Positions 2,087 through 57,735 of a stretch of DNA of 64,000 bases are shown here, one piece after another. The translations under genes and the position numbers were made by a program. How positions within the stretch are numbered: position 1 is the first letter of the stretch; each line of letters begins with the position of its first letter. This DNA is from Macrostomum lignano (lineage: Eukaryota): assembly GCA_002269645.1 (NCBI GenBank), contig NIVC01000570.1:372001-436000 (forward strand), read 5' to 3'. The notes under the pieces are model-generated. The model ran no database searches. It had not been told where the DNA came from and saw only the letters and a list, made by a program, of their open reading frames with translations.

Positions 2087-2269
2087 CTAACCATGAAAAT
2101 GAACGTGGAAGCCCTTCTTCCTCAGCTTCGGGAACTGCTCCTCCGACAGCTTGGAATCGTCCGAGTCGGACGGATCCTCCTTCGACTCGCTTTCGGCCTT
2201 GGCCTCCGAGGGCTCGACAACGACCAGGGCTGCGAAAACCAGAAGTCCGAGAACCAGTTGCCACTTCAT
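2087..2269 (-). CDS. Secreted His-rich prepropeptide, copy 1 (mature GFHVHFH-G)
   Basis: 60-aa ORF MKWQLVLGLLVFAALVVVEPSEAKAESESKEDPSDSDDSKLSEEQFPKLRKKGFHVHFHG: hydrophobic N-terminus, acidic spacer, RKK, terminal Gly; paralogous to 12 other loci. Confidence 0.85.
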   Translation of the reverse strand: MKWQLVLGLLVFAALVVVEPSEAKAESESKEDPSDSDDSKLSEEQFPKLRKKGFHVHFHG

Positions 2270-2375
2270 GATTGCTTGAGTCGAGTCGATTCTTAGAGTT
2301 GTGTGTAGATTGAGTCGAGTCTGAGCTTGTTGTGTTGAGCAGTCGGCAGCTGCAAATTTATATGCATCGGATCGG

Positions 2376-2388
2376 CACGTGTTTCCGG
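2376..2388 (-). promoter_or_regulatory. Conserved promoter motif CCGGAAACACGTG (E-box CACGTG next to an ETS-like GGAA), followed by a TATA-like element
   Basis: GGAAACACGTG lies upstream of all 11 full-length copies (also 15068, 17339, 22111, 30511, 32319, 43493, 47170, 50171, 52626, 53879), followed by TATAAA/TATATA or a close variant. Confidence 0.6.
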
Positions 2389-3620
2389 TCCGTCGAGTGG
2401 TGTTGTTTGAGCTGAATGCTTTCGCGTGAGCAGAGATAGGCGTTGCTTTAAGCGAATATCATGTAGCGTTTGTTTGCTTGTTGACACCCGAACAGTCAAA
2501 CAAGTACCGCTCAAGCATTTTCTTAGAGCAGGACACTGCAGGTATTCTCGTATTCGTTTCACTAAATATGAATGAGACTTTTGATGTGGAAAAACTGTCG
2601 TACTTCATCTAGGAGAAGAATCCCGGTAGAGACAGTGCATGTAAAAAAAGAAAGAGAACAATATTCGTAAGATTAAGGAGTAAAAGCGTTGTATGTTGAG
2701 GGGGTTGTTAACTTAAATGTTTCACTCCCCCTCTTCTTATGCATATTCTTCTTTTTGAGTCTTGAAGTTTCTTCTTCTTGATTTTTTTAGTTTCTTCTGC
2801 CTGTTAGGCTCCATTAATTGGTGAAATAAGACCGTTTGCATCTAATGACCCGATCAGCACAGTGATTAGAACTGTGATGACCGGAAACACAATTTTTAGG
2901 TAGTTTAGCGATTCCTAGTTTTATTTAATCGGAATGAGGCGAAGCATACTTTTGTGACTATGTACTTTTTTTCTTGAATGGGTTATAATATTTTTTCTGA
3001 ACTTGAAGGTCTTTTGCCTGGGATTTTTCAAATCCTAGTGCTTAAGTGGTAGCTTTTTTAAGTGGGCACCTTTGTTGTGTCATGATATTACGATATATCA
3101 CATGGTAAAGATATAAGTTTTAATCAATTTAACAAGTTTTCATACTAGGCAAGTGCCGTATAAGTCCGTCTTTCAGCAACTCACTCAATTAGTTTACTCA
3201 GTACATGTTCGAAACTGTTTAGCACAAATTTGTTCAATCTCATTTAACTGGAAAGCCCAGAAGAGTCGCGATGAGTTTAAAATTTTTAGAAAGGGTGAAA
3301 AATGCTGTCGAAATAAACACGGCGGTAGCAAGTCGGAAGTTGTCGATTTGCGCGTTGGTAGATTAAACGAGCCGAAGTCAGAATATAAGCTTGCGAATGG
3401 CATGCTTCCACGCATTTCCAGCCTGTGTGTGGATTCTCGTCATTTTATGCTTTGTTCGATCAAACCAAATTGGCTACTGAAATCTAAGCAGTTCGAAATC
3501 TAACCAGAAAAGTTAGAAACTACTATTAGAAACTGCAGAAATCGACACTCAGTGATCGGAACAACAATCTGTAAATATTCCCATGTCGTGGAATTTATTC
3601 TCCACTGCTGACAAATACAG

Positions 3621-3683
3621 ATGTCGGAGGAGCAGTTCCCGAAGCTGAGGAAGAAGGGCTTCCACGTTCATTTTCATGGTTAG
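3621..3683 (+). pseudogene. Prepropeptide copy 2, 5'-deleted (MSEEQFPKLRKKGFHVHFHG*)
   Basis: Last 20 codons and 3' flank match the family; upstream sequence joins directly to the far-upstream flank of the unit, so promoter and signal-peptide region are deleted. Confidence 0.8.
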
Positions 3684-4024
3684 ATGAGCCACATCGCACA
3701 TCGAAATCGCTTCATCGATCGGAAGATTAAGACAAGTCACAGCTGACGGACTTTAAACATTGATTTGAAACCGCCCAATTCGGAATGGTAAACGTAATAT
3801 TTGCCCGTATTTGCTGATTTTAATAAATATAACAACCAGAACAGTATATTAGCTACCCAATGAAGCTATAATCTCTGTGTTTTTGAGCTTTGCTAATTTC
3901 TTCGAGTTGCGATTCATTTGGAGATTTTTTATACAAATTTACTTACGGATAACGTTTGGTCGCTTTCATGAGATATTGTGCATCAAATTCCATTTATCGA
4001 AGCTCACTGGACTCTGAAATCTAA

Positions 4025-4626
<602 letters not shown>

Positions 4627-4629
<3 letters not shown>

Positions 4630-4797
4630 ATGCAAAAGGCAGTTTCAACCTGCAAACCACACACACGGAAATATTGAAGAACGTTATTTTTCGAATATTC
4701 AGAAACCGATATTTCGGCCAGAACCTGGCCTTCATCAGGGTTTATACTTGAGGTATAAAAACGATTATTTTGGCAGTGAAGTTATTTAATCAGAAAT
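4627..4797 (-). repeat. ~170-bp dispersed repeat containing a hammerhead motif (Penelope-terminus or retrozyme-like), copy 1
   Basis: Near-identical to 14331-14503. Confidence 0.75.
4703..4743 (-). ncRNA. Minimal type I hammerhead ribozyme motif
   Basis: Minus strand: AAACC-CUGAUGA-A-GGCCAG-GUU-CUGGCC-GAAA-UAU-C-GGUUU; stem I AAACC/GGUUU, 6-bp stem II, palindromic AUAU stem III, AUC cleavage triplet. Confidence 0.75.
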
Positions 4798-5324: not shown

Positions 5325-5358
<34 letters not shown>

Positions 5359-6097: not shown

Positions 6098-7039
6098 AGC
6101 ATTGAAATTTCAGTAATTCTCTCTAAGAGTCTATAGCACTACTACAGCATTAAAGCGATTCCCTGCAAGCCTCGACATCGTAGGGATTCCCAAATTAATC
6201 TCTTAACTTCGACATGAAGCTTCTTTTTTTTTACATTACGCTTTTTCTATCAGCGATCCCTCCCGTGAGGAGCCAACAAATAATGTAATAACTTTTTCCA
6301 ATAAACTACATGTAGCTTCTGACATTAGCCTTGACATCTCATTTATTCCCCCGTGAGCCTTGACATCTCAGCTATAGATAGATAGATAGATAGATTCCCC
6401 TCGTAAGCCTTGACATGTCAGCGATGCCCCCCATAAACCTTGAAATCTAAAAAATCCCCTGTTAACCTTGAAACGCGCTAAAATCTAACCCTCAACCCAA
6501 ACCTGACGTAAACCTAACTTTTACCCAACCTAAAGCCTTGAAATCACAGCAATTCTTCTTCCCTAAGCCTTGGCATTTAAGTGATTCCTTCTTTAAGAAT
6601 CACAGCACTATAACGATTCCCTCCAAGCTTTGACATCGTAGCAATTCCCAAATGAATCTTTTAACTTTGACATGACTTTTATTTTATGTATACATAGTGC
6701 TCCTTTTATTTTTACATGACTCTTCTTCTATCAGCGCCCCCCCCCACCGTGGCAAGCCAACAAAGAATGCAATAAAAAAACTTAAGTAAAGTACATGTAC
6801 TTTGAAGTAGCTTCTGACTTTTGCTTTAACATCTCAGAAACCCCCTGTAATCTCAGTTATTCTCTGTGAGCCTTGACGTCTCAGTGATTCTCCCCAGCAC
6901 AGCACTATAGCTTCATTTAATTTTTATGACACTTGTTTCATGTCTGACATGACGCTTCTTTTGATTTTTACGTTACGCTTCTTTTATTCTTCCATGATGC
7001 TTCTTAATTTTTTAAAAGACACACTTTCATTAGTTTTTA

Positions 7040-8200
7040 TATGAGGCTTCTATGATTTTTTCATGACGCTTCTATGCTAACATGACGCTTCTATGCTTGT
7101 TTACATGACGCTTTTATGATTGTTTACATGACGCTTTTATGATTGTTTACATGACGCTTCTATGATTGTTTACATGACGCTTGTATGATTGTTTACATGA
7201 CGCTTCTATGATTTTTTACATGACGCTTCTATGATTTTTACATGACGCTACTATGATTTTTACATGACGCTTCTATGATTTTTTCATGACGCTTCTATGA
7301 TTTTTACATGACGCTTCTATGATTTTTACATGACGCTTCTATGATTTTTTACATGACGCTTCTATGATTGTTTACATGACGCTTCTATGATTGTTTACAT
7401 GACGCTTCTATGATTTTTAAGACGCTTTTATGATTTTAACATGACGCTTCTATGATTTTTTACATGACGCTTCTATGATTGTTTACATGACGCTTGTATG
7501 ATTGTTTACATGACGCTTGTATGATTGTTTACATGACGCTTTTATGATTTTAACATGACGCTTCTATGATTGTTTACATGACGCTTCTATGATTTTTACA
7601 TAACGCTTCTATGATTTTTACATGACGCTTCTATGATTTTTTCATGACGCTTCTATGATTTTTACATGACGCTTCTATGATTTTTACATGACGCTTCTAT
7701 GATTTTTTACATGACGCTTCTATGATTGTTTACATGACGCTTCTATGATTGTTTACATGACGCTTCTATGATTGTTTACATGACGCTTTTATGATTGTTT
7801 ACATGACGCTTCTATGATTTTTACATGACGCTTCTATGATTGTTTACATGACGCTTCTATGATTGTTTACATGACGCTTCTATGATTGTTTACATGACGC
7901 TTGTATGATTGTTTACATGACGCTTCTATGATTTTTTATGACGCTTTTATGATTTTAACATGACGCTTCTATGATTTTTTACATGACGCTTCTATGATTG
8001 TTTACATGACGCTTGTATGATTGTTTACATGACGCTTGTATGATTTTAACATGACTCTTCTATGATTGTTTGCATGACGCTTTTATGATTTTAACATGAC
8101 GCTTCTATGATTGTTTACATGACGCTTCTATGATTGTTTACATGACGCTTCTATGATTGTTTACATGACGCTTGTATGATTGTTTACATGACGCTTCCAT
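7040..8200. repeat. Minisatellite A, 22-23-bp unit ACATGACGCTTCTATGATTGTTT
   Basis: About 50 head-to-tail units, no spacers. Confidence 0.95.
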
Positions 8201-8235
8201 AATTTTTTTTGTCTTGGCGTTAAAAAGCTTTAATT

Positions 8236-8585: not shown

Positions 8586-8619
8586 AAATAATCCTATACA
8601 TGTAGCCAAGCTTATCAAG

Positions 8620-10118
8620 CGCAGTAATCCTTGGCTATCGAGTGCAGTAATCCTTGGTTTATTAATAGCAATAATCCATGGCTTATCGAGTGCAGTAATT
8701 CTTGGTTTGCCAAGTGCAGTAAGTAATCCTTGGTTTATTAATAGCAATAATCCATGGCTTATGAGTGCAGTAATCCTTGGTTTATTAATAGCAATAATCC
8801 TTGGCTTATCGAGTGCAGTAATTCATGGTTTATTAATAGCAATAATCCTTGGCTTATCGAGTGCAGTAATCCTTGGTTTATTAATAGCAATAATCCTTGG
8901 CTTATCGAGTGCAGTAATCCTTGGTTTATTAATAGCAATAATCCATGCCTTATCGAGTGCAGTAATCCTTGGTTTATTAATAGCAATAATCCTTGGCTTA
9001 TCGAGTGCAGTAATCCTTGGTTTATTAATAGCAATAATCCATGGCTTATCGAGTGCAGTAATCCTTGGTTTATTAATAGCAATAATCCTTTATTAATCAA
9101 GTGCAGTAATCCTTGGTTTGCCAAGAGCAATAGTCCTTGGTTTATTGAGTGCAGTAATCCTTGGTTTATTAATAGCAATAATCCTTGGCTTATCGAGTGC
9201 AGTAATCCTTGGTTTGCCAAGTGCATAATCCTTGGTTTATTAATAGCAATAATCCTTGGCTTATCGAGTGCAGTAATCCTTGGTTTATTAATAGCAATAA
9301 TCCATGGCTTATCGAGTGCAGTAATCCTTGGTTTATTAATAGCAATAATCCATGGCTTATCGAGTGCAGTAATCCTTGGTTTATTAATAGCAATAATCCA
9401 TGGCTTATCGAGTGCAGTAATCCTTGGTTTGCCAAGAGCAATAGTCCTTGGTTTATTGAGTGCAGTAATCCTTGGTTTATTAATAGCAATAGTCCTTGGT
9501 TTATTGAGTGCAGTAATCCGTGGTTTATTAATAGCAATAATCCTTGGCTTATCGAGTGCAGTAATCCTTGGTTTGCCAAGTGCATAATCCTTGGTTTATT
9601 AATAGCAATAGTCCTTGGTTTATCGAGTGCAGTAATCCTTGGTTTATTAATAGCAATAATCCTTGGCTTATCGAGTGCAGTAATCCTTGGTTTATTAATA
9701 GCAATAATCCATGGCTTATCGAGTGCAGTAATCCTTGGTTTGCCAAGAGCAATAGTCCTTGGCTTATCGAGTGCAGTAATCCTTGGTTTGCCAAGAGCAA
9801 TAGTCCTTGGTTTATTGAGTGCAGTAATCCTTGGTTTATTAATAGCAATAATCCTTGGCTTATCGAGTGCAGTAATCCTTGGTTTGCCAAGAGCAATAGT
9901 CCTTGGTTTATTGAGTGCAGTAATCCTTGGTTTATTAATAGTAATAGTCCTTGGTTTATTGAGTGCAGTAATCCTTGGTTTATTAATAGCAATAATCCTT
10001 GGCTTATCGAGTGCAGTAATCCTTGGTTTATTAATAGCAATAATCCTTGGCTTATCGAGTGCAGTATTCCTTGGTTTGCCAAGAGCAATAATCCTTAGCT
10101 TATCGAGTGCAGTAATCT
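8620..10118. repeat. Minisatellite B, 48-bp unit made of two 24-bp subunits (GTAATCCTTGGTTTATTAATAGCA ATAATCCTTGGCTTATCGAGTGCA)
   Basis: About 31 head-to-tail units. Confidence 0.95.
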
Positions 10119-10914: not shown

Positions 10915-11545
10915 ACCACAAGCATCCCCAGATAGCAAGCATTCCCCAGATAGCAAGCATCCCTCAAATAGCAAGCATCCCCCAGATAGCAAGCATCCCC
11001 AGATAGCAAGCATCCCCCAGATAGCAAGCATCCCCCAGATAGCAAACATCCCCAGCCAGATAGCAAGCATCCCCAGATAGCAAGCATTCCCCAGATAGCA
11101 AACATTCCCCAGATAGCAAGCATTCCCCAGATAGCAAGCATCCCTCAGATAGCAAGCATACCCCAAATAGCAAGCATCCCTCAGATAGCAAGCATCCCTC
11201 AGATAGCAAGCATCCCCCAGATAGCAAGCATCACTCAGATAGCAAGCATCCCTCAGATAGCAAGCATCCACCAGATAGCAAGTATCCCTCAGATAGCAAG
11301 CATCCCCCAAATTGCAAGCATCGCCCAGATAGCAAGCATCCCCCAGAAAGCAAGCATCCTCCAAATAGCAAGCATCCCCCAGATAGCAAGCATCACTCAG
11401 ATAGCAAGCATCCCTCAGATAGCAAGCATCCACCAGATAGCAAGCATCCCTCAGATAGCAAGCATCCCCCAAATTGCAAGCATCGCCCAGATAGCAAGCA
11501 TCCCCCAGAAAGCAAGCATCCCCCAAATAGCAACCATCCACCAGA
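10915..11545. repeat. 17-18-bp minisatellite AGATAGCAAGCATCCCC
   Basis: About 35 tandem units. Confidence 0.95.
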
Positions 11546-11642
11546 CAAAAAGTAGCTAGAGCGACAATTTCCTTAGCTTTATAGTGGCTCATTTAAATTG
11601 GCATGGCGCTTTATACCTTTACATTTGAAATTGTATATCTTG

Positions 11643-13495
11643 AATGTTTGACATGGTGGCTCTTTTATGTTTGACATGGTGGCTCTTTATTGTTCGACAT
11701 GGTGGCTTTTTTATGTTTGACATGGTGGCTCTTGTATGTTCGACATGGTGGCTCTTTTAATGGTCGACATGGTGGCTCTTTAATGTTCTTCATGTTGGCT
11801 CTTTTATGTTTGACATGCTGGCTTTTTTATGTTTGACATGGTGGCTCTTTTATGTTCGACATGGTGGCTCTTTTATGTTCTACATGGCTGCTCTTTTATG
11901 TTCGACATGGTGGCTCTTGTATGTTCGACATGGTCGCTCTTTTGGGTTTGAAATGGTGGCTCTTTAATATTTGACAAGGTGGCCCTTTAATGTTTAACAT
12001 GGTGGCTCTTTAAATTTCGAAATGGTGGCTCCTTAATTTTCGAAATGGTGGCTGTTTTATGTTTGACATGGTGGCTCTTTAATGTTCGACATGGTGGCTC
12101 TTTAATGTTCTTAATGGTGTCTGTTTTATGTTTGACATGGTGGCTCTTTATTGTTCGACATGGTGGCTCTTTAATTTTCGAAATGGTGGCTGTTTTATGT
12201 TTGACATGGTGGCTCTTTAATATTTGACAAGGTGGCCCTTTAATGTTTAACATGGTGGCTCTTTAATTTTCGAAATGGTGGCTCCTTAATTTTCGAAATG
12301 GTGGCTCTTTTATGTTTGACATGGTGGCTCTTTAATGTTCGACATGGTGGCTCTTTAATGTTCGACATGGTGGCTCTTTAATGTTCTTAATGGTGTCTGT
12401 TTTATGTTCGACATGGTGGCTCTTTTATGTTCGACATGGTGGCTCTTTAATGTTCGACATGGTAACTCTTTTATGTTTGATATGGTGGCTCTTTTATGTT
12501 CGACATGGTGGCTCTTTAATGTTCGACATGGTGGCTCCTTTAGGTTTGAAATGGTGGCTCTTTAATGTTTGACATTGTGGCTCTTTTATGTTCGACATGG
12601 TGGCTCTTTTAGGTTTGACATGGTGACTCTTAAATGTTTGACATGGTGGCTCTTTAATGTTTCACATGGTGGCTCTTTAATATTTGACATAAAGTCACAT
12701 ATATGTTTGACATGGTGGCTCCTAAATGTTTGACATGGTGGCTCTTTAATGTTCGACATGGTGGCTCCTTAATTTTCGAAATGGTGGCTCCTTAATTTTC
12801 GAAATGGTGGCTGCTTTATGTTTGACATGGTGGCTCTTTAATGTTTGACATGGTAACTCTTTTATGTTTGATATGGCTGCTCTTTTATGTTCGACATGGT
12901 GGCTCTTTAATGTTCGACATGGTGGCTCCTTTAGGTTTTAAATGGTGGCTCTTTAATGTTTGACATTGTGGCTCTTTTATGTTCGACATGGTGGCTCTTT
13001 TAGGTTTGACATGGTGGCTCTTAAATGTTTGACATGGTGGCTCTTTAATGTTTCACATGGTGGCTCTTTAATATTTGACATAAAGTCACATATATGTTTG
13101 ACATGGTGGCTCTTTATGTTTGACATGGTGGCTCTTTTATGTTCGACATGGTGGATCTTTTTTGTTCTACATGGTAACTCTTTTATGTTTGATACGGTGG
13201 CTTTTGAATGTCTGACATGTTGGCTCTTTTATGTTTGACATGGTGGCTCTTAATTGTTTGACATAGTGGCTCTTTAATGTTCAAAATGGTGGCTCTTTAA
13301 TGTTCGAAATGGTGGCTCTTTAATGTTCGAAATGGTGGCTGTTTTATGTTTGACATGGTGGCTCTTTTATGTTCGACATGGTGGCTCTTTAATGTTCGAC
13401 ATGGTAGCTCTTTAATGTTCGACATGGTAGCTCTTTTATGTTTGACATGGTAACTCTTTTATGTTCGATATGTTGGCTCTTCTATGTTTGACATT
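11643..13495. repeat. Minisatellite C, ~23-bp unit TGTTCGACATGGTGGCTCTTTAA
   Basis: About 80 tandem units; distantly similar to satellite A (ACATG..GCT..T.ATG). Confidence 0.95.
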
Positions 13496-13545
13496 GCGCT
13501 TCTTTGATGTTTAGCAGTTTTGTTGTGTTTTTAAGGTGTTTTAAT

Positions 13546-14803: not shown

Positions 14804-15185
14804 ATTCTAAAAATCCTAGTTTCAAACATTTATTCTGCACTTTTAAAAGCTAGTGTAATTTGGCTTTACTATACAACTGCTCAAATAGAGCTCCGTGTTG
14901 TGTAGTGCAGCGCGATTAGTGGGATATATTTGCACTGAGAAAACGTTAGAGCGGTACTTGTTTCATTGCTCGGGTGTCAACAAGCAAATAAATGCTACAT
15001 GATATTCGAGTAAAGCAACGCCTGTCTCTGCTCACGCGAAGCAACTCAAACAACGCCGTTCCTCGGACCGGAAACACGTGCCGATCCGATGCGTATATAT
15101 TCGAAGCTGCGACTGCTCAACACAACAAGCTCAGACTCGACTCAATCTACACACAGCTCGAAGAATCGACTCGACTCAAGCAATC

Positions 15186-15368
15186 ATGAAGTGGCAACTG
15201 GTTCTCGGACTTCTGGTGCTCGCAGCCCTGGTCGTTGTCGAGCCCTCGGAGGCCAAGGCCGAAAGCGAGTCGAAGGAGGATCCGTCCGACTCGGACGATT
15301 CCAAGCTGTCGGAGGAGCAGTTCCCGAAGCTGAGGAAGAAGGGCTTCCACGTTCATTTTCATGGTTAG
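15186..15368 (+). CDS. Secreted His-rich prepropeptide, copy 3 (GFHVHFH-G)
   Basis: ATG at 15186 within ORF 15078-15368; 60 aa, family architecture intact. Confidence 0.85.
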   Translation: MKWQLVLGLLVLAALVVVEPSEAKAESESKEDPSDSDDSKLSEEQFPKLRKKGFHVHFHG

Positions 15369-15574
15369 ATGAGCCACATCGCACATCGAAGTCGCTTCAT
15401 GAATCGGAAGATTAAGGCAACTCACAGCTGGCCGGACTTTGAACTTTGACTCGGAACTGCCCAATTCTAAACGATAAACGTAATATTTGCCCGTATTTGC
15501 TGGTTAATTTTAAGAAATATAACAACCAGAACAGTATATTAGCTACCCAATGAAGCTATAATCTCTGTGTTTTA

Positions 15575-16125
<551 letters not shown>

Positions 16126-16129
16126 ATTG

Positions 16130-33044: not shown

Positions 33045-33540
<496 letters not shown>

Positions 33541-34980: not shown

Positions 34981-35249
<269 letters not shown>

Positions 35250-35268
35250 ATATCTATCTATCTACCTG

Positions 35269-35326
<58 letters not shown>

Positions 35327-35430
35327 ATCTATCTATGATCTATTTACCTATCTATATTAGAGATTTAATCACGGAAATTTTCACATGTTGAAGGCAAGTT
35401 AATCAAGCTGTTCGTACTGGTCCGGGAGCA

Positions 35431-47400: not shown

Positions 47401-50400
47401 GTCTGTGGAGAAAAAAATGCGTACAATTTGGGATATCTACAGATTGTTATTTCGGCTACTGCGTGTCTATTTCTGCAGGTTCTGGTGGTTGTTCTCGACA
47501 TGTCAGATGGTTTTTTGCAATCCTTAGATTCGATTGTTTACTCGATCTGGGTAAGCGGAAAGCAGAAAATACGGAAAAACCAGAAAATAAATGCTTAGTA
47601 TGGTAGACTTAATAGGCTGATAGACCTAATATGGATTTGCTGACGTACTTAATGGGGATCGATTTGCTTGGCAAATCATAATTTGAAGGGGTTCAAACTT
47701 AACTCAGCTACTACTACTTAGGCTGTATATTGATACTGCTTCAAGAGTCTCAGTGAAAGGAGCTTTAAGTCAAGGGAAATTAAAGTGTATGGTCGGTCTT
47801 ACCTTCTCTATTTTCTCCCTGGTCTTTCTATTTATGCTGTAAAAGTTTCCTATGGCAATCGTCAAGAGTCATAAGCGATATTACATGCGGTACGTAAAAA
47901 TTGGGCGACAAAGGGTAGGCCATAGAATAATGCATCCCAGAATAATGCATGTGAAGCACGAGTAGTTGTCGAATATTTATCAATTCTAAGACATACTACA
48001 CAATCTACCATTAAGACCCACTTAATTTACTGGGAAATGTAATAAACTCCGTCAGCTACCTTAGGAAGCGAGCGACAACAGTTCAAAACTAAGGATTATT
48101 TTATTAGTTCGACTCACAGATACTATAACAATTAACATACTATTTATTACTATCTGTGGTTTCACCAGAGAATATCGAGTATACATAGACTGCCAATAGA
48201 GGGGTCTAAAGTGAAGCCGATTTTATTCCTTCCGGGACTCTACTTTTTGGCCATAGACATTGAGTTTTAGCGGGCGCAGTTAAAAAAATTGGCTTGCAAT
48301 ATTCCAATATTGAGACTGTCTATGGTAAAATCCCATTTACCACAATGCATTCAGTCGGTTTCACGGCCCGCTGGAAATGTCTATGACAAAGTCAGAAGAA
48401 AGCGGGGTCAAGGGGCGCTGAGCCCCCTCGTGGGGGTGTGGGGGCGGAGCCCCCACATTAGCACACCAACACTCTAGACAAAGAAAGAGATAATAAAATC
48501 TAAAAATAGTCTATGGCCAAAACTCCTTATTTTGCGAATTGGGACGATGGAGCCAGTAAGTAACATAGGAAAAATGCGAGCGTAGCGAGTAGGCTAACTA
48601 TAACTCAATTGTCAATTCCAAGTCAGCTAGGCATCAGAAACAGTTCCATATATTGATCATATAGTTTAGCTTAAAGGCCATCGAGAAGAAGTACACCTCA
48701 GAGGACGAATTTCAAACCATTCAAGATCGGTGAAGCGCATGAATTGAAAATGAGACCGACATAATTTTACCTTTTTTGTATCAAATAAGCTTTTAATTTG
48801 ACACCGCACGTTGAAAATTTCATGAACACATTGATGAGCATCGTCACTTTCTCACAACAAGATCGGCGAAAAATAAATGAATACATTGACAACCAAGATT
48901 GGCAACAATTAGCGGGATCGCTGAACATTTGCGTCAGTCTGCCAGAACTGAAATCGTCAAACGCGTCCAATCCGGTCGTGTTCAAGCTGTTTCAAGAGAC
49001 CAGGACGCAGCCTCGTCGTTCCTTTGAGCGAATATCATGTGGGAATCCCGGTAGAGACAGTGAAAAAGAGAAACTAAGAATCTATCGATCTACCCGATAG
49101 AAGAGTTTATCAAATTGAAAAAGGCGATAAAAGTTTTTAAAAACAAAATCACCATTACAGTCTTGAGGGGATTGAAGAAAGTGAGATTTAGCAAAAATCG
49201 TATTGTAGAAAACTACCCCGCCACGAAAGCTACTAGCCTTTATCTCGTCTTGCAAATTATTCTCATCTTCTTTTACACTCTCTACCGGGATTCTAAAGTG
49301 GCAGTTTTGCTACTTTGAATAACTTTCGCATACGCTCCTATTTAGTGAAGAAATGAATACCTGGTTGTATTGTGAATATTTCATGAAAATGCAGCACTAA
49401 GTCATGGCAAGTTGCCAGGTAAACATTTAAGGGGTAAGAAGTCGTGAGGGAAAGTAGTCCCCTCTAATGAGTAAGTAGCCAACGTGAGATAAAGATGTGA
49501 ATTAGAAACCTTTTAAATAAAGATCTGCCAGGTAAACCAAGCTCCATCAACTATATCAGACAATCCAGATTGAGTCCATCTCGCAGCCCCAATCAACAAT
49601 CTGAACCTTATCTAGTGGTTACTTTAATGAGAGCTCAGGGGGCTTTGCAGTGATTAAAGAATATATTCAGACAGTTTGATGTCGAAGGATCGAGATGAAG
49701 AAAGAATAAAAGCTGGCAAACTGTGCGCTTCCATGCATATCTGGCCGGCCATGCGTCCGGTTGTCGGCTCACTAAATCCGCTTACCCGTATCACAACTTC
49801 AAACAATCAAAGTACCCTGGTAGTTCTAAGTAGCACCTGACAAGTTGAGAACCGCCATCAGAAACTGCAGAAATCGACACGCAGTAGCCGAAATACATAT
49901 CTGTAGACATCCCGATTTCGCAACTTTTATCTCCACAATCGATAGATATAGTGTCATTTGGTTTTCTTATGCTAATCATTAAAATCCGTATAGAGTGCCG
50001 CGCAGTGCAGTGTGTAGGATAAATTCACACTTAGAAACGCTGGAGCCTTACTTGTTTGATTGCTCAGGTGTCATAAAGCAAATAGACGCTGCAATGATAT
50101 TTGGTTAAAGTAACGCTTCTCTGCTCAAGCGAAAGATTGCAAATCAAACAACGTCGCTCATCGGATCAGACAGGAAACACGTGCCGATCCGATGAGCATA
50201 AATTCGCCGACTGCTGACTGCTCAAGAAAACAAGCTCAGACTCAACACGACTCAAGCAATCATGAAGTGGCAACTGGTTCTCGGACTTCTGCTGTTTGCA
50301 GCCCTGGCCGTCGCTGGGCCCTCAGAGGCCAAGGCCGAAAGTGAGTCGAAGGAGGATCCGTCCGACTCGGACGATTCCAAGATGTCGGAGGAGCAGTTCC

Positions 50401-53400
50401 CGAAGCTGAGGAAGAAATTCCATCTCCATTTACCTGGTAAATAAGCAGCATCGTACGTCGAAGTCGCTTCATCGAAGATTAAGACAACTCACAGCTGACC
50501 GTACTTTGGACTCTGATCGGAACCGCCCAACTCCTAAAAATTAAGCGTGAAATCTACACAGCCCTTATTCGCTGATCAGTTTTAACAAATATAACAACCA
50601 GCACGATCTAAATAAGCACCTAAAAATCCAAAATATTTGTGTTGACAAGCTTTTTCATTTTTGTCAAGTCGCAAGTTGTCATGTGGAGCACTTGAAGAAA
50701 CGAGTGTAAATCGTCTTGTAGTTAATAATTTGTCGCAGGAAATTCAACAAAAAAGTGTTGAATTATAAGATACTCATTAGGAAGTTTTTGGTTATTCATT
50801 TATTCATTTCACAATTTCAAATAAACTCAACTTTATTGTTGATTTCACAGTGCTCAACAGTAAAACTACCAAGAGAGGGGAGCTTCTGGACCTTCAACAG
50901 GTGGCCCCATGTGACTATGGACGAGCTGTTGCAAAATTCTCCTGTTTCGCCGATCAAGCTTCAATAATGGGCAAGCCTCAACTGCTGGACATGCGTCATC
51001 AACCTGACGCCGTCGGTACCTTCAACAGATTAGCTGAGCCTGGATGAAGGCAAGTGATCAACGAAGTCAGAGCTTCAGACACATATGGTCGACGTACTGA
51101 TGAAATTCGGAGGCTGCACTGAGGCGCAGGGCTGATTGGCGCACAGGGGTGTACTGAATACACTAGGACTTCATCATCAAGGGAAAAATCCGATCTTCTG
51201 GATCTTCTGGCAGAATCGTCGAATATCTCAACGGTCCGGAGGGCTGGCGAATTTTTTCTTGTTTGAGACGGTGCGCAACAAAAATTTTGCCCGTGTTCTT
51301 GAATTCCGTATGCCTGCGTTGCTCCGTTCTGGCGCAACAAAAAATTGTCATTGGGGAATCCCCCCTTCTTGGTAGTTCGACGGGCGGAAAATGGCTTGGT
51401 ATTCCTACTAGCTCGTAGTATTCTACATGGATAGCGAGGCCAAAAAACGATTTAAATGTACAAGGATATGATACAATGAATTAAGAATGAGCGGGGTCAT
51501 GTGGTGTCAGGTAAAAGGTGTACAATGCTTTTTTGAATTGCGAAATGATAATGATGAGATACATCTGCGCGCACTTTGAGCCTTCGCTGTCGAGTCGTGT
51601 TATAAATCTTATTGAAACCAAAATTAATTGTATTCTGTCTATTGTCCCTTGTCAAATTGTCACGCCCTTCACTTAGAGATTTCTCCTGAAATGGGCATTT
51701 GCTTCATGATGGCTCCATGAATCGAACGTTTTATTAAACGGCGCAACTAAGTCAAAAAACAAGAGAACATTCTGTGAGTTAGCGTGACTCAGCCGCAATT
51801 ATGTCAAACTCTAAAGCTGCATAACATGTTTAGTCTTATTTTGGTGACGAGTTACAAATCACCCCAACAATATAATAAATGACCGGAAAAGTTTCGAACT
51901 GCTATTTAAGCACTACGCAATAGTCCATAAAGTAGTAAGCTTGTTGCGATCGAAAAATATTTGCGAAAATGAATGAATAAGCCATAAGCGCTGAATAATT
52001 ACCATATCGAATCAACACATTTTGCTACATTTCGTGCGACAATTCACTTACTGCAAGACGCTACAAGTCTCTACAAGTTCTCCACATTACGACTTCTGAA
52101 TTAAAGAAATTTACAACGCTCAACAACACAAAACTTATGGCTTTATTGGGTGCCTAATTAGATGGTACTGGTTGTTATATTTATTATAACTGATCAGCGA
52201 ATAAGGGCAGTGAAGATTTTAGGTTTTCTATTTAAGAAGTTCAAAGTCAGAGTTCCGAGTCAGGTCAGCTGTGAGTTGTCTTAATCTTCCGATCCATGAA
52301 ACCACTTGTGCGATGTAAGATGTGGCTCATCTAACCATGAAAATGAACGTGGAAGCCCTTCTTTTCCAGCTTGGAGAACTGCTCCTCCGACAGCTTGGAA
52401 TCGTCCGAGTCGGACGGATCCTCCTTCGACTCACTTTCGGCCTTGGCCTCCTCCTGGGTGGGCTGGGCGACGGCCAGGGCGGCGCAAAGCAGAAGTCCGA
52501 GAACCAGTTGCCACTTCATGATTGCTTGAGTCGAGTCGATTCTTCGAGCTGTGTGTAGATTGAGCCGAGTCTGAGCTTGTTGTGTTCAGCTGTCGGAAGC
52601 TTCAAATTTATACGCATCGGATCGGCACGTGTTTCCGGTCCGTTGAGAGACGTTGTTTGAGCTGATGGCTTTTGCGTGAGCAGAGACAGGCGTTGCTTTA
52701 ACCGAAAAGCATGAAGCGTTTATTTTCTTGTTGACACCTGAGCAATGCTAGAACAAGTACCGCTCTAACATTTTCTCGGTGCAAATTTATTCTACGTACC
52801 GCAGTAGACTGCACTGCATTGCATTTTGCTCTTTATCAGATGCATTAGTAAAGCCAAATGACACTATCTATCGAATATGGAAAATATAGTATATGGCTTC
52901 GCGATTGTTTTCTACAATTTGTTATTTGGGCTGCTGCTAAATTCAACGTTGACATCCATTTCTGTAGTTTCCAATTGGGGTTCTAAGCTTGCCATGTGCT
53001 ATTTAGAACTCCTTATATTTGATTCCTTAATGGACTCGGGTGAGCGGATTTCATGAACAGATTTCATAGTGACATCAAGGATATCTCTTCCCTAGAGGCG
53101 CAAGATAATGTCTCGGAGCTGATGACAGGGCAGGAGAGAAGCGCCATTGGATTGCCTGCAGGTTCTCATGTTCCTGCCAGTAACGCCTGTGGTGCTACGC
53201 TCTGCAGTACAAAAGCTGATGACAAGATGGTGTTAGTCCAGTGTGCTTAGCATGGGTTGCAACCGCACATTTAAGAAAATTCAAACACTATAGGTAGTCT
53301 CGTCTGACTGCATTGAACCATCGGTTTTTCAATGGAACTCTGCTGGGTTTCAGCGTAAGTGATGATAGCGAAGTAGCGACGTAGCGACTCGAAAAAAGAG

Positions 53401-55887
53401 TATCAAAAGCTGGCAAACGGCGAACATGCATTTCTTTCGCTAGGTCTGAATTTTCCGAATTTTCTGCTTTGTTCGATCGCACACGAAATCGGCTCCCTAA
53501 ATCCGCTACCCGGGAATAAGAAAGTAAGGAATCAAATCTACGAGCTAAGGAGTTCTAAATAGCGTCTGAAAAGTTGAGAACCACTAATCAGAAATTGACA
53601 CGCAGTAGCCGAGACAAAAATCTGTAAATATCCCGTTTTGCGATATATTCTCCATAATTGATAGATAGTGTCATTTGGCTTTACTATGCAACTGACTTAA
53701 TATTCAAATGCAGTTTAGTACAGTGAGGTTCCTAAGATACATTTGCGCTGTGAAAATGCTAGAGCGGTACTTGTTTGATTGCTCGGGTGTCAAAAAGCAA
53801 ACAAACGCTACATGATATGCGCTTAAAGCAACGCTGCTCGCGCAAAGGACTTCAAATCAAACAACGTTGCTCGACGGATCGGAAACACGTGCGTATATAT
53901 TAGCAGCAGCCGACTGCTCAACACAACAAGCTCAGACTCTACTCGACTCAAGCAACCATGAAGTGGCAACTGGTTCTCGGACTTCTGCTGTTCGCAGCCC
54001 TGGTCGTCGCCGAGCCTTCCCAGGAGGACGACAAGGGCCAAAGTGATTCGAAGGATGATCCGACCGAGATGGACGTTTCCAGCATGTCGGATGAGCAGTT
54101 CCCGAAGCTCAGGAAGAAATTCCACCTTCATTTACCTGGTAAATAAGCAACATCGTACATCGAAGTCGTTTTATCGAAGAATAAGTGACTAGCACTCAAA
54201 ACTCACAGCTGACCGGACTCTGAACTCTGACTCCGAACCGAACAATGCCTGAATGGTAAACGTGAAATCTACACAGCCCGTACTCACTGATCAGTTTTAA
54301 TAAATATAACAACAAGCTGCATCCTTCTTGGTACCTAATGCAACTGTAATATATGTTTTGTTGAGCTTTGTAAATTTGCTCGAGTCACAAGTCGTCACGT
54401 GGAGAACTTGTAGACACATTGACTTTAAATACTTCAAATACTTCAAATAAGAAGTAGTTATTCTTCGCAGGAAAAATAGAAAAATGACTCGCTAATGACT
54501 GTGGAGCATGTTGGTTTGGGTTCTAATGTAGAGTAAGTCTTTCGCGAATTGTATCTTGTCAATGTTTTCATCGAGACGCGGATTTTCTATTTGGGCTCCT
54601 TTCCCTTGTATTTTTTTAATTGTCAGCTCATAAAATTGGCCCTATGAGACTGTGAAAAGCCAGAGCAGCTTAAACCGAGTTACTGCACAAAGCAACTTAT
54701 AATGGAGGCCGATCAGCAAAACAGTGCGCTCAATCACACGCCTTTCTCTTCGCTTGTTAATTAAAATCGTTAGAGAAGCCATCTTCTGGGCTTAATTATC
54801 TGAGCTCAATTGTCTGAAAGTCAGAGGCTATGCACAAATAGTTTATACTAAATTAATTTCGCATGTACCAATTATAGTTACTATTAAGGCAAGTAGTTTT
54901 TAGGGGAAGTATACAAAAGTAAACGTGAAAGGCCCTGGAAGCCTAACTTTTGAAACTTATATTGAAAGGCCCTGGAAGCAAGAGGATATACCATTCCGCT
55001 TGAAAATGCAATGGGCGAGCTCAAAGTTGTCCTGTCTTTGTCAAATTTTACTTCATGACTCTCTGAAGATAAAAAATCCTTACAGTGCTTTTTCATTCGA
55101 TATAAAGCAGTACTTGTGAATTTATAGTGTCAAAAATGAAGATAAATCTCTAATACGAGCTAAATTTGCATTTAAAGGCATTTTCATGAACCTTTATGTG
55201 CGTTTGCAAAGTTCAAGAATACGAGAATCGTCAATTTGACGATGGATACCAAATAAATGCATATCTCATCAATTATTTCACTATGTAATGTCGTCTCGCA
55301 ACCATTTGTCCTTAAAGAAACCCCTTTGGGCACCTCGCAGCGCGCCGGGCGGATTTCCATCAATGCTACCTTGTATATCGTAACCAACTATTCTCTAGCG
55401 ACGCAGTTGGACAGTCTGGCTCACCCTTCTCCGCTCTGCACCCTCGTTCTGCGCTGCGGTCCTGCAGACTCGTGAGAATCCGACCGAGCCAGGAGGCACA
55501 GCTCCCAGCGAAGAGTTCCTCGGCGCCCTCGTCCTTCAGCTGGGCATTGGCGCAGTCAATCGGCAGCTCCCAGTATCGTGGCAGCGGCAGCTCGCGCACT
55601 AGCCGGGCCGTCGCCAACCGGAATTCGTCCCTGTCCGGCTCGGCCAGCCAGGCTCTGAGGCGGGCGGCGCCAATATCTGGTGCGTAGACGCCAGACAGCA
55701 GCGCCGAGTGCCGGTAGCAGCGATAGCTCGGCGGCAGGCGGAGCGTCGCGTTTAACGACGGAGCCGAAGTCGGCGGACAGGGCAAACGGGCGTCAAACAG
55801 CAACCGCTGACGTCCGCGAATGACGAGCGTGGCTTGAAGTCGAACTGTCTGCCGGCTCGGATGGCGGCATCTGACCAGCAGAGTTAC
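35431..55887 (-). CDS. SEL1L3: SEL1L3-like protein (LamG-like region, Sel1 repeats, C-terminal TM), multi-exon; first exon not located
   Basis: Exons with GT-AG ends: 55425-55887, 41694-41817, 41174-41420, 39898-40169, ~39491-39700, 39250-39390, 38527-38909, ~37346-37784 (frameshifts), 36818-36901, 36549-36730, 35933-36197, 35431-35602. Colinear with remembered human SEL1L3 motifs (RAW, FTxSxWxYL, IGG, DLFQWxxHQAxRG, YNLGVL, GxEVAxxNLA, MGD, FNLA, PCxLA). Confidence 0.8.
35712..35888. repeat. 28-bp intronic minisatellite ACACAGACAGGACACAGGTTGCAAAAGT
   Basis: About 6 units; duplicate at 33918-34095. Confidence 0.9.
38527..38909 (-). CDS. SEL1L3: SEL1L3-like exon (start of the Sel1 repeat region)
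   Basis: LALATKHYLG...DDLFQWISHQAGRGVPWAKRKMADLLYWGSSG; CAG acceptor and GTGAGT donor. Confidence 0.85.
43198..43386 (-). CDS. Secreted His-rich prepropeptide, copy 8 (intronic; protein identical to copy 6)
   Basis: 62-aa ORF in track. Confidence 0.85.
   Translation of the reverse strand: MKWQLVLGLLLCAALAVAQPTQEEAKAESESKEDPSDPDDSKLSEEHFSMLKKKGFHVHFHG
44000..46030 (-). mobile_element. Degenerate APE-type LINE (R1/LOA-like)
   Basis: QINL...LILIHEPW (AP endonuclease), NTDW..Y...ITAAFEAAC...PW linker, LKSAFDN (RT); many stops and frameshifts. Confidence 0.75.
46875..47063 (-). CDS. Secreted His-rich prepropeptide, copy 9 (intronic; protein identical to copies 6 and 8)
   Basis: 62-aa ORF in track. 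Confidence 0.85.
   Translation of the reverse strand: MKWQLVLGLLLCAALAVAQPTQEEAKAESESKEDPSDPDDSKLSEEHFSMLKKKGFHVHFHG
48245..48522. mobile_element. MITE with 14-bp TIR TTTTGGCCATAGAC
   Basis: TTTTGGCCATAGAC at 48245 and GTCTATGGCCAAAA at 48509. Confidence 0.6.
48670..49090 (+). repeat. Degenerate dispersed repeat, homologous to 27225-27660
   Basis: Direct sequence similarity. Confidence 0.7.
49043..49293. mobile_element. MITE with TIR GAATCCCGGTAGAGA
   Basis: GAATCCCGGTAGAGA at the left end and TCTCTACCGGGATTC at the right; left-end motif also at about 2619 and 27600. Confidence 0.55.
50262..50444 (+). CDS. Secreted His-rich prepropeptide, copy 10 (FHLHLP-GK class; intronic)
   Basis: 60-aa ORF ending RKKFHLHLPGK. 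Confidence 0.85.
   Translation: MKWQLVLGLLLFAALAVAGPSEAKAESESKEDPSDSDDSKMSEEQFPKLRKKFHLHLPGK
52331..52519 (-). CDS. Secreted His-rich prepropeptide, copy 11 (EKK-GFHVHFH-G; intronic)
   Basis: 62-aa ORF in track. Confidence 0.85.
   Translation of the reverse strand: MKWQLVLGLLLCAALAVAQPTQEEAKAESESKEDPSDSDDSKLSEEQFSKLEKKGFHVHFHG
53958..54146 (+). CDS. Secreted His-rich prepropeptide, copy 12 (FHLHLP-GK class, divergent spacer; intronic)
   Basis: MKWQLVLGLLLFAALVVAEPSQEDDKGQSDSKDDPTEMDVSSMSDEQFPKLRKKFHLHLPGK. Confidence 0.85.
   Translation: MKWQLVLGLLLFAALVVAEPSQEDDKGQSDSKDDPTEMDVSSMSDEQFPKLRKKFHLHLPGK
55425..55887 (-). CDS. SEL1L3: SEL1L3-like N-terminal exon
   Basis: VTLLVRCRHP...RLRAWL...SCASWLGRIL...GCRAEK; its phase-1 donor joins the acceptor at 41818 in frame (CRAEKERVQFNEFP). 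Confidence 0.7.
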
Positions 55888-57039
55888 CTGGAGAGGTGAG
55901 GTACATAATAAAGAAGTAGAAAATTCTTTCTCTGAGATAGAGGAGCGAGGGTGGGTGGCATTGTTCCAGATGGCGGTCGAGATCGTACTGCTGTACATCA
56001 ACGAGACTGTTACGCTGACATACTCGCTCAAAAATGAGGAGACTCTTAAGATGGTCCTTCAGGGATGATCTCGTAAGATATCCCTCATGATTTCTCCTAA
56101 ATCTTGTTCCGATTTGATTATCTGGCCTTAAGAAATTACAACTGGATTTCCACTTTTATGATTAGCATCGGATGTGTACTTTATAAATCGTTCTTTGGAA
56201 ATTCTTTCCCAAGATCCCAAGATGTATCTGAAAATGTGTCCCTAAGAGAGTGTGTGTGTTAAAGACTCGAAGATTATTTCTTTCACTACGAGTGAAAAAC
56301 TGAGCACTTTGGTACAGATTTTAAGAGAGACACTTTCGAAAATCCTTAATGGAAAATCCTACCAGACACACCCAGAGAGATTTTCTCCCCTTTCTCAGTC
56401 TTATGTAGTGAGAGGGGAAGTCGATTTTGTAGCAACTGATTAAAGAATGCACAGAACCAGAGGACAGGAAAAATGCTTTTGTGATTTTCAATGAGATGCT
56501 AATGACCTGTGCTGTGGCTCATTTGTGGATCGGATTGAGTACTGATGGTATTGAAATGAAGCGAGTAATAGGGGAATTCCGCAATTTATTTCCAGACTGT
56601 GGGTTTCAAATTGACCTGAAAGTTATTTTTTCTGGGGTAGATTGCAGTGTCTTAGGAGAGGAATGATTATAGTACTCTCATGTAGCGACTTCTGTCCTCC
56701 TCCTGATTGGTCCTCACTTCTTCCCTCTTTAGCCTCTAGTTCTCACTCCATCCCTCTATTCCTTTTGCGTAGCTAACCCACCCGTTGTGGGCTTCGTTCA
56801 CTCACTCAAACTTTTGCTATTGTTTTTACAAAAAGTGACAAATTTTTGTTATTATTATTACGAAATGTGTTGTAATAGATAGATTCACACACCTCTAAAA
56901 CTGTAAACTTCAATCCCAAAATTTGGTAGAAGACTTTACACAACCAGCCTGTTGCTAAACTCTCCTCCAATCTGGAAAATATTATTCCCTAGCTTTACTA
57001 TTGAAAGTAACAAAGAAGCGTCAGAAAGGCAAGAAATGA

Positions 57040-57270
57040 AAGAAATGGACGGCAACATCGAGTGGTCCGTCAGCAACGGGTCTGCGAGCGCCATTAGCGA
57101 AAAGAGCTGAAGGAACCGTGATCGGAGCTGCTCATCGACATTGGGCATCCCGCGAGAGATCACCACCCGCATCGACCACAGTTTGATTTCAAAGAATCCG
57201 AGGACTTCCTGAAGGCGTGCGGCATCGACCATCGATAAGCTTTATTTTGTCATTCTCGAAGCCATTCCAG
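57040..57270 (+). mobile_element. Possible LTR-retrotransposon integrase relic
   Basis: LGIPREITT and PQFDFKESEDFLKACGIDHR in adjacent frames resemble the rve core GIPxxxxSDNGPQFxSxEFxxFLxxxGIxH. Confidence 0.45.
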
Positions 57271-57627
57271 CTTCGGTAACCCCAGAGCCTGCTTATTGGG
57301 TTAGCAACTCAGTAGCACTGAACTGTCATTTTCCCTCAGAAATATCTATGCATTCGAATGTAGCCACATCTGCTCATTCAAGCTAATGCAATCGCTAATT
57401 TCTGGGGGTTGGAGTTCTAACTGCCTCTGAGTCAATTCGGAGTAAGTCTCGTCTTCAAGTCGCCGAATTCATCAGCAGTCGCCCAAATCACGATTTTACA
57501 GACGCCCCATTTTAGCGCAGTTACCTCAGATACTGTGTAAACTGTCATTAAATTCGCAGCTGCCAACTGCTCAACACAACGGTCTTATATTCGACTCAAT
57601 CTACGCAACTCGAAGACTCAAGCAATC

Positions 57628-57735
57628 ATGAAGTGGCAGCTCGCTCTCAGACATTTGCTGAGGAGCCTACCCAGTAAGAGGCCATGGCCGTCCAACGTGG
57701 ACGAGCTAAACATGTCGCATCGAACTCCGACTTAA
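57628..57735 (+). pseudogene. Degenerate prepropeptide relic, copy 13
   Basis: CAAGCAATCATGAAGTGGCAGCT start context, 5' UTR-like flank and downstream ACCAAATATAA match the family; no acidic spacer or mature peptide remains. Confidence 0.6.

Follow-up and report, generated by a model that had tools for sequence, protein, structure and literature searches.

A cluster of short histidine-rich peptide precursor genes in Macrostomum lignano as a branch of a Macrostomum-restricted superfamily of candidate secreted effectors

What are the short open reading frames (ORFs) that recur along one contig of the flatworm Macrostomum lignano, and what would their products do? They lie in a stretch of 64,000 nucleotides (contig NIVC01000570.1 of assembly GCA_002269645.1, positions 372,001 to 436,000 of the forward strand), referred to here as a whole as the window, in which a sequence-only reading had recognized an amplified cluster of 13 genes for a secreted, histidine-rich micropeptide precursor. 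Sequence comparison identifies this cluster as the histidine branch of a superfamily restricted to Macrostomum, which is a new result. The sister branches resemble cationic host-defence peptides in their properties, and on this ground it is proposed that the family would consist of host-defence (or otherwise externally acting) effector peptides, a reading to which we give about an even chance.

Together with a six-frame ORF list, tblastn searches with four precursor variants matched twelve loci in the window at E-values of 1e-21 to 1e-40, which excludes an origin of the copies by chance; a thirteenth fragment was added by blastn with whole units. As had been counted from the letters, ten ORFs of 60–62 residues are intact and three copies are damaged. 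Common to all intact copies are a signal peptide, an acidic spacer and a KK pair, followed by GFHVHFHG or FHLHLPGK and the stop codon. The C-terminus reads KK-GFHVHFHG-stop in seven of the ten intact ORFs and KK-FHLHLPGK-stop in three, and within each of the two types the mature peptide is invariant over all copies. The units, with the signals marked in two of them, are the following (window coordinates):

c01, 1828–2530, minus strand: unit with an intact ORF at 2087–2269, MKWQLVLGLLVFAALVVVEPSEAKAESESKEDPSDSDDSKLSEEQFPKLRKK followed by GFHVHFHG and stop
c01 signals, minus strand: GGAAACACGTG motif at 2386, then TATA-like ATATAAAT; AAATATAAC at 1935
c02, 3619–3902, plus strand: truncated pseudogene, of which the last 20 codons (3621–3683, MSEEQFPKLRKKGFHVHFHG and stop) and the 3′ untranslated region (3′UTR) are left
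c03, 14848–15573, plus strand: unit with an intact ORF at 15186–15368, GFHVHFHG type, in a convergent pair with c04
c03 signals, plus strand: E-box-like motif at 15070, TATA box at 15093, AAATATAAC at 15515
c04, 16875–17724, minus strand: unit with an intact ORF at 17043–17225, GFHVHFHG type
c05, 21928–22662, plus strand: unit with an intact ORF at 22230–22412, GFHVHFHG type
c06, 30259–31042, plus strand: unit with an intact ORF of 62 residues at 30630–30818, LLLCAALAVAQPTQEE within the signal, GFHVHFHG type, convergent with c07
c07, 31732–32572, minus strand: damaged unit of FHLHLPGK type, ATG at 32218, copy at 32037–32218
c08, 42916–43826, minus strand: unit with an intact ORF of 62 residues at 43198–43386, GFHVHFHG type
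c09, 46615–47530, minus strand: unit with an intact ORF of 62 residues at 46875–47063, GFHVHFHG type
c10, 49822–50701, plus strand: unit with an intact ORF at 50262–50444, KLRKK followed by FHLHLPGK and stop, in a convergent pair with c11
c11, 52067–52937, minus strand: unit with an intact ORF of 62 residues at 52331–52519, SKLEKK followed by GFHVHFHG and stop; canonical AATAAA at 52185
c12, 53489–54425, plus strand: unit with an intact ORF of 62 residues at 53958–54146, FHLHLPGK type, with the most divergent propiece
c13, 57549–57735, plus strand: degraded copy with a remnant of the 5′UTR, ATG at 57629, MKWQLALRHLLRSLPSKRPW continuing to a stop

Copy c02 is a 3′ fragment with neither signal peptide nor promoter, and an inverted scrap of promoter lies at 3528–3605. 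In c07, the frame is broken by the deletion of one nucleotide within a GG run at codon 8; since the counterpart on the gap-free scaffold NIVC01004264.1 (locus L008, position 19594, plus strand) is intact, the deletion may have arisen recently or may be an error of the assembly. The start of c13, MKWQLAL, belongs to an arginine-type sister subfamily and not to the His type; its E-box-like motif is absent and its TATA box has decayed.

How large is the repeated unit, and what does it carry? The alignment of the eleven full-length units shows conservation from about −330 to about +480 relative to the ATG, that is over 0.8–0.9 kb, less than the approximately 1.2 kb assigned to the unit by the sequence-only reading. 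The GGAAACACGTG motif occurs in all eleven, with a TATA box about 23 nucleotides downstream of it; this box lies 65–100 nucleotides upstream of the ATG in every full-length unit, each of which also has a strongly conserved 5′UTR and an uninterrupted ORF. As a poly(A)-like signal, a conserved AAATATAAC stands 114–164 nucleotides past the stop, with AATAAA in its place in two copies. A hydrophobic core and AxA-like sites are seen by eye in the signal region, and in Pfam the precursor has no family match above the gathering score. The precursor is the sole ORF of each unit, the transposase and reverse-transcriptase ORFs of the window lying outside the units. A transposon as the repeated unit was rejected, as no inverted or long direct repeats bound it and its edges fade gradually. 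For the same reasons, fading rather than abrupt edges and the absence of bounding repeats, the units spread by segmental duplication rather than transposition; the membership in a genome-wide transposon family that had been considered as an alternative does not apply, the family being clustered.

The relationships of these genes were resolved by profile searches. When 1.84 billion representative proteins were searched exhaustively with a hidden Markov model (HMM), the hits were M. lignano proteins and a 929-bp contig from Logan, with E-values of 1e-10 to 1e-36 for superfamily members; the sole hit besides these was a weak match to a 1,022-residue moth protein (E 1.8e-05, seven stretches). A profile search of a database of 5.8 billion clusters gave 26 clusters, all of M. 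lignano plus the Logan contig, and a profile of the prepro region only added neither members nor species. Barring the weak moth match, the lineage specificity expected from the letters is therefore upheld. Summed cluster member counts give about 60 distinct gene models on at least 12 scaffolds, about 25 of them of His type on four scaffolds. Rather than a repeat dispersed over the genome, this is a family of clustered genes, seen in an assembly that is polyploid and redundant. In its signal peptide, M(K/R)WQ(L/I/F)(A/V)LGLLL..., the residues M1, W3, Q4, L7, G8, L9 and L10 are invariant over His, Arg and long cationic members, and so are K51 and K52; outside the signal and KK, only a few propiece positions are invariant, and the mature region has no invariant residue. 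The relatives keep the signal peptide, the acidic propiece and KK, and differ in the C-terminal peptide, which is hypervariable and, in most members, strongly cationic. Short forms of it are IFRVHVRF, FVRVHVRF, IFRVRVHI, IFRVRVRI, FVRVRVRL, WLRVRARVRI, FIRARVRVRL and FIHIHF; further ones are FRIRIRWGRVARNVLRLL, WLLRRIRIRWRRVLRVASRVYRIYRYLPI and WRIKSACKIFRRLLHLARKCYAKK, and the relatives include a 29-mer of charge +11 and one member with two Cys. M. lignano members with an intact C-terminus have Gly or Gly-Lys between the peptide and the stop. At the nucleotide level GGT TA(G/A) is conserved across the approximately 60 paralogs, the His2 type keeping GGT AAA TAA; in c10 this end differs from type 1 by a 3-nucleotide deletion (GGC) and a 1-nucleotide deletion ahead of the stop. 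The layout read from the letters, with signal, acidic propiece, basic site and Gly-extended peptide, is thus real and constrained, since KK and the terminal GGT-stop are invariant over about 60 paralogs.

The kinship of the His and Arg genes extends beyond the protein. They align in the promoter core, the 5′UTR, the coding sequence (CDS) up to AAGAAG, the GGT-stop and the 3′UTR, and GGAAACACGTGCC.ATC.GATG.G.ATAAATTCG together with the 5′UTR can be aligned between both types and also with the Logan contig. The core of the promoter, GGAAACACGTGCC.ATC.GATG.G.ATAAAT, does not vary among the units; it lies at about −117 to −85 from the ATG (e.g., window 15070–15100) and contains an E-box-like CACGTG adjoining GGAAA; it is common to His- and Arg-type genes and partly to the Logan contig. 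This sharing suggests one common transcription factor for the whole superfamily. The Logan contig itself (SRR31628392, 929 bp) encodes a 31-residue Pro/Arg-rich peptide, FLRVRLPRVRMPRVRLPRVRLPRLRVRFRWS, ending in Ser-Lys-Lys, and its promoter has diverged yet is recognizable; it could show the family in another Macrostomum species. Arg-type genes are found on the reference scaffold at a distance of 110–150 kb from the His genes. There, at 438–476 kb of NIVC01000181.1 (loci L003 and L004), at least eight distinct genes of the Arg and FIHIHF types form a sister cluster; the locus is a supercluster.

Are the ORFs kept by selection? Variable CDS sites fall on codon positions 1, 2 and 3 in 11, 12 and 25 cases, respectively. 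Four indel events were found in the CDS (6 and 3 nucleotides in frame, the c07 frameshift, and the 1-nucleotide deletion that turns GGT TAG into GGT AAA TAA), as against 23 in the promoter and 16 in the 3′ flank. The pairwise ratio of nonsynonymous to synonymous substitution rates (dN/dS) is mostly 0.14–0.7 and not, as the sequence-only reading had allowed for, near 1 throughout; values of about 1 or higher occur only against the most divergent copy, c12, where counts are small. Between paralogs the CDS and 5′UTR are far more similar than the flanks. The CDSs of c06, c08 and c09 are 100% identical over 189 nucleotides with flanks 80–86% identical, and at a flank-like divergence the probability of zero synonymous change in these three (about 41 synonymous sites) is about 5e-4. 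Copy c07 is a mosaic of a c03-like promoter (98%) and a type-2 peptide. The counterpart of c08 in L008 (10055, plus strand) differs in its propiece at four residues (…SDSDDSKLSEEQFSKLEKK versus …SDPDDSKLSEEHFSMLKKK) from window 43198–43386 (minus strand), which is likely a footprint of gene conversion between paralogs. Codon-position bias, CDS indels, dN/dS, identical CDSs, the c07 mosaic and the c08 variant together indicate that these genes, while duplicating and decaying, are also subject to purifying selection and gene conversion; the evolution by birth and death that had been proposed agrees with the duplication, decay and gene conversion seen here. The 1-nucleotide deletion before the stop was tolerated solely in a form still giving Gly-Lys-stop, which argues that the terminal Gly matters.

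Are the copies transcribed? The precursor matches, at 100%, M. lignano GenBank proteins entered as “hypothetical protein BOX15_Mlig..., partial”, most of whose models carry spurious N-terminal extensions because the 5′UTR is open in frame. These models were built from RNA sequencing (RNA-seq) with StringTie/TACO and a de novo transcriptome; weakly expressed novel transcripts were dropped, and transcripts over the repeat annotation were removed before submission (PMC5730564). RNA-seq-derived models exist for the counterparts of at least five copies (c08–c12) on two collinear scaffolds, and since these models derive from RNA-seq, the copies are transcribed; the possibility raised earlier that no copy is transcribed is thereby answered. 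It had also been supposed that ORFs so short would be missed by annotation, which is not the case, as they stand in GenBank as BOX15_Mlig hypothetical proteins, mostly “partial”. The related description of the genes as unrecognised has to be divided: gene models exist and three long relatives are listed in a published table of peptides resembling antimicrobial peptides (AMPs), whereas the nature of the genes, their unity as a family and the His branch are undescribed in the searchable literature. A full-text search of a literature library found the peptide strings, the precursor strings and the gene identifiers in none of its papers.

From this anatomy we infer secretion, cleavage and amidation of the product. 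The N-terminal 18–23 residues are a predicted signal peptide, which signal peptidase would remove; SignalP 4.1 is positive on the signals of relatives, near-identical to those of the window genes, in the part of supplementary table S5 of PMC10414684 covered here. The acidic, Ser/Asp/Glu-rich propiece may keep the cargo soluble and neutral within the secretory pathway. A prohormone-convertase-type enzyme would then cut past the invariant KK, a carboxypeptidase would trim the terminal Lys where present, and peptidylglycine amidating monooxygenase would use the terminal Gly, so that the predicted products are GFHVHFH-NH2 or FHLHLP-NH2. The sister branches would release strongly cationic, amphipathic peptides patterned as beta strands or helices and similar in character to AMPs. 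It is proposed that in the His branch Arg was replaced by His at the cationic positions of an alternating hydrophobic/cationic pattern. Intermediates between the two patterns are present (FVRVHVRF, IFRVRVHI, FIHIHF); the direction from Arg to His, like any activity, is what we infer. The His peptides would be nearly uncharged at seawater pH, +3/+4 in acid, and able to bind Zn, Cu or Ni. Such binding could occur through the HxHxH or the N-terminal GFH arrangement: GFHVHFH fits the amino-terminal Cu/Ni-binding (ATCUN) type, with His at position 3, if it is cut exactly past KK, whereas FHLHLP has His at position 2. Copy number may have grown through duplication of single units and of convergent gene pairs, with the ORFs maintained by purifying selection and homogenized by gene conversion.

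The defence reading draws on the properties of the relatives. Their mature peptides have charges of +3 to +12, and the His peptides +1 at pH 8 and +3/+4 at pH 5. The short peptides have a beta-strand hydrophobic moment of 0.58–0.64 versus a helical one of 0.14–0.18. The synthetic 8-mer IRIKIRIK is bactericidal (PMC4330034), and the Arg-type 8–10-mers have the same residue pattern. A screen of helminth proteomes by Irvine et al. (2023), which took in M. lignano Mlig_3_7, combined SignalP and ProP with eleven AMP predictors (PMC10414684). Within the part of their table S5 considered here, BOX15_Mlig024774g1/2, Mlig026130g1-3 and Mlig001477g4 are listed as AMP-like, being SignalP-positive and called by 9–11 of the eleven predictors. 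In these entries the shared signal peptide (MKWQLALGLLLC..., MRWQFVLGLLLC...) is followed by an acidic propiece and then by a C-terminal peptide, and their sequences mark the genes as true paralogs of the window genes. They differ from the window peptides in mature lengths of 17–22 residues and more, in being highly cationic and in that their activity is predicted; as far as the table was covered, they stand there as three unrelated groups, as against one superfamily here. Groups found in a single genome were left out of the high-confidence library of that study, and peptides of <10 residues were excluded (PMC10414684). Because of this exclusion the His-type and the 8–10-mer Arg-type genes fall outside the set, and His-type strings are absent from the covered part of table S5. 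For relatives, the defence reading therefore has computational support from an independent source.

The more positive the mature peptide, the more negative the propiece: its net charge is −2 to −6 where the mature charge is +1, and −9/−11 where it is +11/+12 (Spearman −0.71). This correlation is computed over phylogenetically non-independent paralogs, so its significance is overstated, and several further points weigh against defence. KK is rarer as a convertase site than KR or RR. The His peptides, +1 at seawater pH, are not classical cationic AMPs; with 6–7 residues they fall below nearly every natural AMP in length as well as in charge, and standard AMP predictors would not pick them up. 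The Ser/Asp/Glu-rich propiece, which is strongly conserved in the His branch, could be the part that functions. The literature search yielded no site of expression, no induction or peptidomics data and no activity assay, and the gene identifiers are absent from the M. lignano transcriptome supplements on genome annotation, ageing, germline/neoblast, ploidy and intestine; the search likewise gave no useful Macrostomum cell atlas or infection study.

The best placed of the alternatives, though an unlikely one, takes the products as a material or metal agent. Peptides in which Phe/Val/Leu alternate with His would be soluble in acidic granules; discharged at the pH 8 of seawater after release, they would self-assemble with Zn2+/Cu2+ into beta-sheet fibrils or coacervates for mucus, for adhesion and release, for rhabdites or for egg shell. 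As a variant, the phosphorylatable acidic propiece may be the product. The peptides are close to the Zn-binding amyloid heptapeptides Ac-IHIHIQI-NH2, Ac-LHLHLRL-NH2, Ac-FHFHFQF-NH2 and Ac-QFHFHWG-NH2, a designed or derived group that self-assembles at pH 8 (PMC10008563, PMC13533019). The likeness is in pattern alone: the natural peptides have a free N-terminus and lack the acetyl cap, and FHLHLP terminates in Pro. The beta-strand moment far above the helical one, a copy number that fits a bulk product, and the unusually conserved His-branch propiece, rich in Ser-x-Glu/Asp, speak for a material, whereas the peptides in the remainder of the superfamily are rich in Arg, keep their charge at pH 8 and look antimicrobial rather than structural, and the literature offers no expression link to adhesive or rhabdite glands. 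A bolder proposal, made by analogy and rather improbable in our estimate, is that the His peptides might be natural counterparts of the “catalytic amyloid” heptapeptides, kept soluble by the acidic propiece and the low pH of the granule and assembling with Zn2+/Cu2+ in seawater into a beta-sheet material. If so, the material might be structural, adhesive or release-related, metal-sequestering or even catalytic, and the switch from Arg to His would have made an antimicrobial scaffold pH- and metal-gated.

Similarly unlikely, and next in order, is signalling, in which the products would be neuropeptides, hormones or pheromones, that is, amidated receptor ligands made by neurons or secretory cells, with effects inside a worm or from one worm to another. 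Signal, spacer, basic site and Gly donor follow the logic of a neuropeptide precursor, and amidation is typical of such peptides. RFamides are myoactive peptides of flatworms, and two relatives end in ...VRF-NH2; the invariance of the mature peptide among the copies of each type also suits a ligand. However, a single peptide stands at the extreme C-terminus of each precursor instead of multiple copies between dibasic sites, and about 60 gene models with mature peptides of 6 to 31 residues and charges of +1 to +12 are unlike a receptor-constrained ligand. Unlike the known flatworm neuropeptide families, these genes have no homolog outside Macrostomum among the 1.84 billion representatives and 5.8 billion clusters, and the charge compensation by the propiece suits a toxic cationic cargo. 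That the peptides are instead deterrents or toxins against predators, competitors or prey, and not against microbes, is quite improbable: a conserved prepro region with hypervariable mature peptides in expanded clusters is a venom-peptide pattern too, and very cationic members occur in the family, but M. lignano is a diatom grazer that is not known to have a venom apparatus, and disulfide scaffolds are missing except for the one relative with two Cys. A non-functional repeat, transposon cargo or assembly artefact is largely refuted and highly improbable: the region is rich in transposons and satellites, the assembly is highly redundant (PMC5730564) and one duplicated segment at a gap is probably artefactual, but the units have no terminal inverted or long direct repeats at their fading edges, each has its own promoter, their ORFs are preserved with third-position-biased variation and in-frame indels, the gene models survived the repeat filter, and the flanks of paralogs on the same scaffold differ by 10–25%, hence these are not assembly duplicates.

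How does the locus continue, and how far can its assembly be trusted? Many copies, in the window and on other scaffolds, form convergent pairs with ATG-to-ATG distances of 1.6–2.8 kb, and the inverted gene pair would probably be one amplification unit. The 13 copies in the window stand, but the limit of 56 kb earlier given to the cluster does not, as it continues with five more copies in 20 kb at 576–596 kb of the reference scaffold, possibly overlapping the left end of the window. M. lignano is a recent polyploid. Its assembly is highly redundant (PMC5730564). Given this, and an identity of the window to the collinear GenBank scaffolds of about 97.5% (NIVC01000181.1) and about 96.9% (NIVC01004264.1), the window is another haplotype, homeolog or assembly of the locus held by these scaffolds. 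One gap interrupts it:

assembly gap, 34758–34980, no strand: 223 N, outside every peptide gene, with the nearest copy 2.5 kb away

A 1.57-kb segment (1,572 bases) is found on both sides of the gap, at 33186–34757 and 34981–36553, with 98.4% identity; it contains an (ATCT)n array, a 28-bp repeat and an exon-like ORF of a weak Sel1-repeat gene. On the gap-free scaffold NIVC01004264.1 (L008), collinear with window 31.6–53 kb and about 97% identical, the segment occurs once, and the gene order from c07 to c08 across the gap site is kept. The sequences flanking the gap therefore do lie next to each other, and the doubled segment probably reflects contig ends that overlap but were not merged. Disruption of a gene or of the cluster by the gap was considered and rejected, as no frame of the family is touched and L008 confirms the order.

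Other elements lie between and around the units. A piggyBac-type transposase ORF (Pfam DDE_Tnp_1_7, E 3e-27) is located at 19384–21111 on the minus strand, between c04 and c05. A GC-rich block (55–59% GC) at 22867–26888 on the plus strand contains a SAP-domain ORF, a reverse-transcriptase ORF (RVT_1, E 4e-13) and a 384-residue ORF without a Pfam match, and looks like a retroelement inserted into the cluster. A series of exon-like ORFs at 33803–39000 on the minus strand, with sub-threshold Sel1-repeat matches (best 20.8 bits versus a cut-off of 30.7), is an unrelated multi-exon gene within the cluster. Satellite arrays, which produce many spurious long ORFs, occur on the left with periods of 23 bp (6947–8208), 48 bp (8612–10117), 18 bp (10919–11545) and 23 bp (11638–13512), and on the right with 17 bp (60658–61224) and 23 bp (61784–62664). 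(GATA/ATCT)n microsatellites at 4405–4630, 15576–16124, 33046–33561 and 34981–35355 adjoin several peptide units, the (GATA)n array at 15576–16124 lying directly 3′ of c03; such arrays might favour unequal recombination and thereby the amplification of the cluster.

If the effector reading is correct, a transgenic model flatworm amenable to RNA interference carries a large, self-contained superfamily of effector peptides with a common promoter, which would be a handle on flatworm innate defence and its regulation. The compact promoter of about 330 bp could become a cell-type or infection reporter, and a natural Arg-to-His series in amidated beta-strand peptides of 6–10 residues could be useful for peptide design. 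It is also worth noticing that length cut-offs (<10 residues) and “partial” CDS models conceal such genes from prediction pipelines.

How does the family compare with known systems? In the preprodermaseptin-type AMPs of amphibians, a conserved signal, an acidic propiece and a basic site precede a hypervariable, often Gly-amidated mature peptide. The Macrostomum family has the same layout, and both are multigene families diversified by duplication. However, the Macrostomum genes have no sequence homology to them, use KK instead of KR and have uninterrupted ORFs in 0.8-kb units, and their mature peptides are far shorter and beta-strand-patterned, not helical. The nlp-29/cnc genes of Caenorhabditis elegans are tandem genes for tiny secreted peptides, similar to neuropeptide precursors and with an antimicrobial role in the epidermis. 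Like the Macrostomum cluster they are lineage-specific, rapidly evolving clusters of tiny genes, but there each precursor holds several Gly/Tyr-rich peptides, whose sequences are unrelated. Histatins, clavanins and piscidins owe a pH-dependent charge and metal binding to His, and several have an X-X-His N-terminus. They share with the Macrostomum peptides the His-based charge pattern and, as in GFH..., the N-terminal X-X-His; with 20–40 residues they are mostly helical and show no homology, and FHLHLP has its His at position 2, not 3. The synthetic IRIKIRIK-NH2 (PMC4330034) and the amyloid peptides IHIHIQI, LHLHLRL and FHFHFQF (PMC10008563, PMC13533019) have 6–10 residues, the same strict alternation between hydrophobic and Arg/Lys or His residues, and a C-terminal amide, but both are synthetic, the amyloid set is N-acetylated, and they resemble the Macrostomum peptides by pattern alone. 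The Macrostomum genes are a new family, restricted to its lineage, that would function in the manner of the known AMP precursor families without kinship to any of them and that includes an unusual, ultra-short histidine variant.

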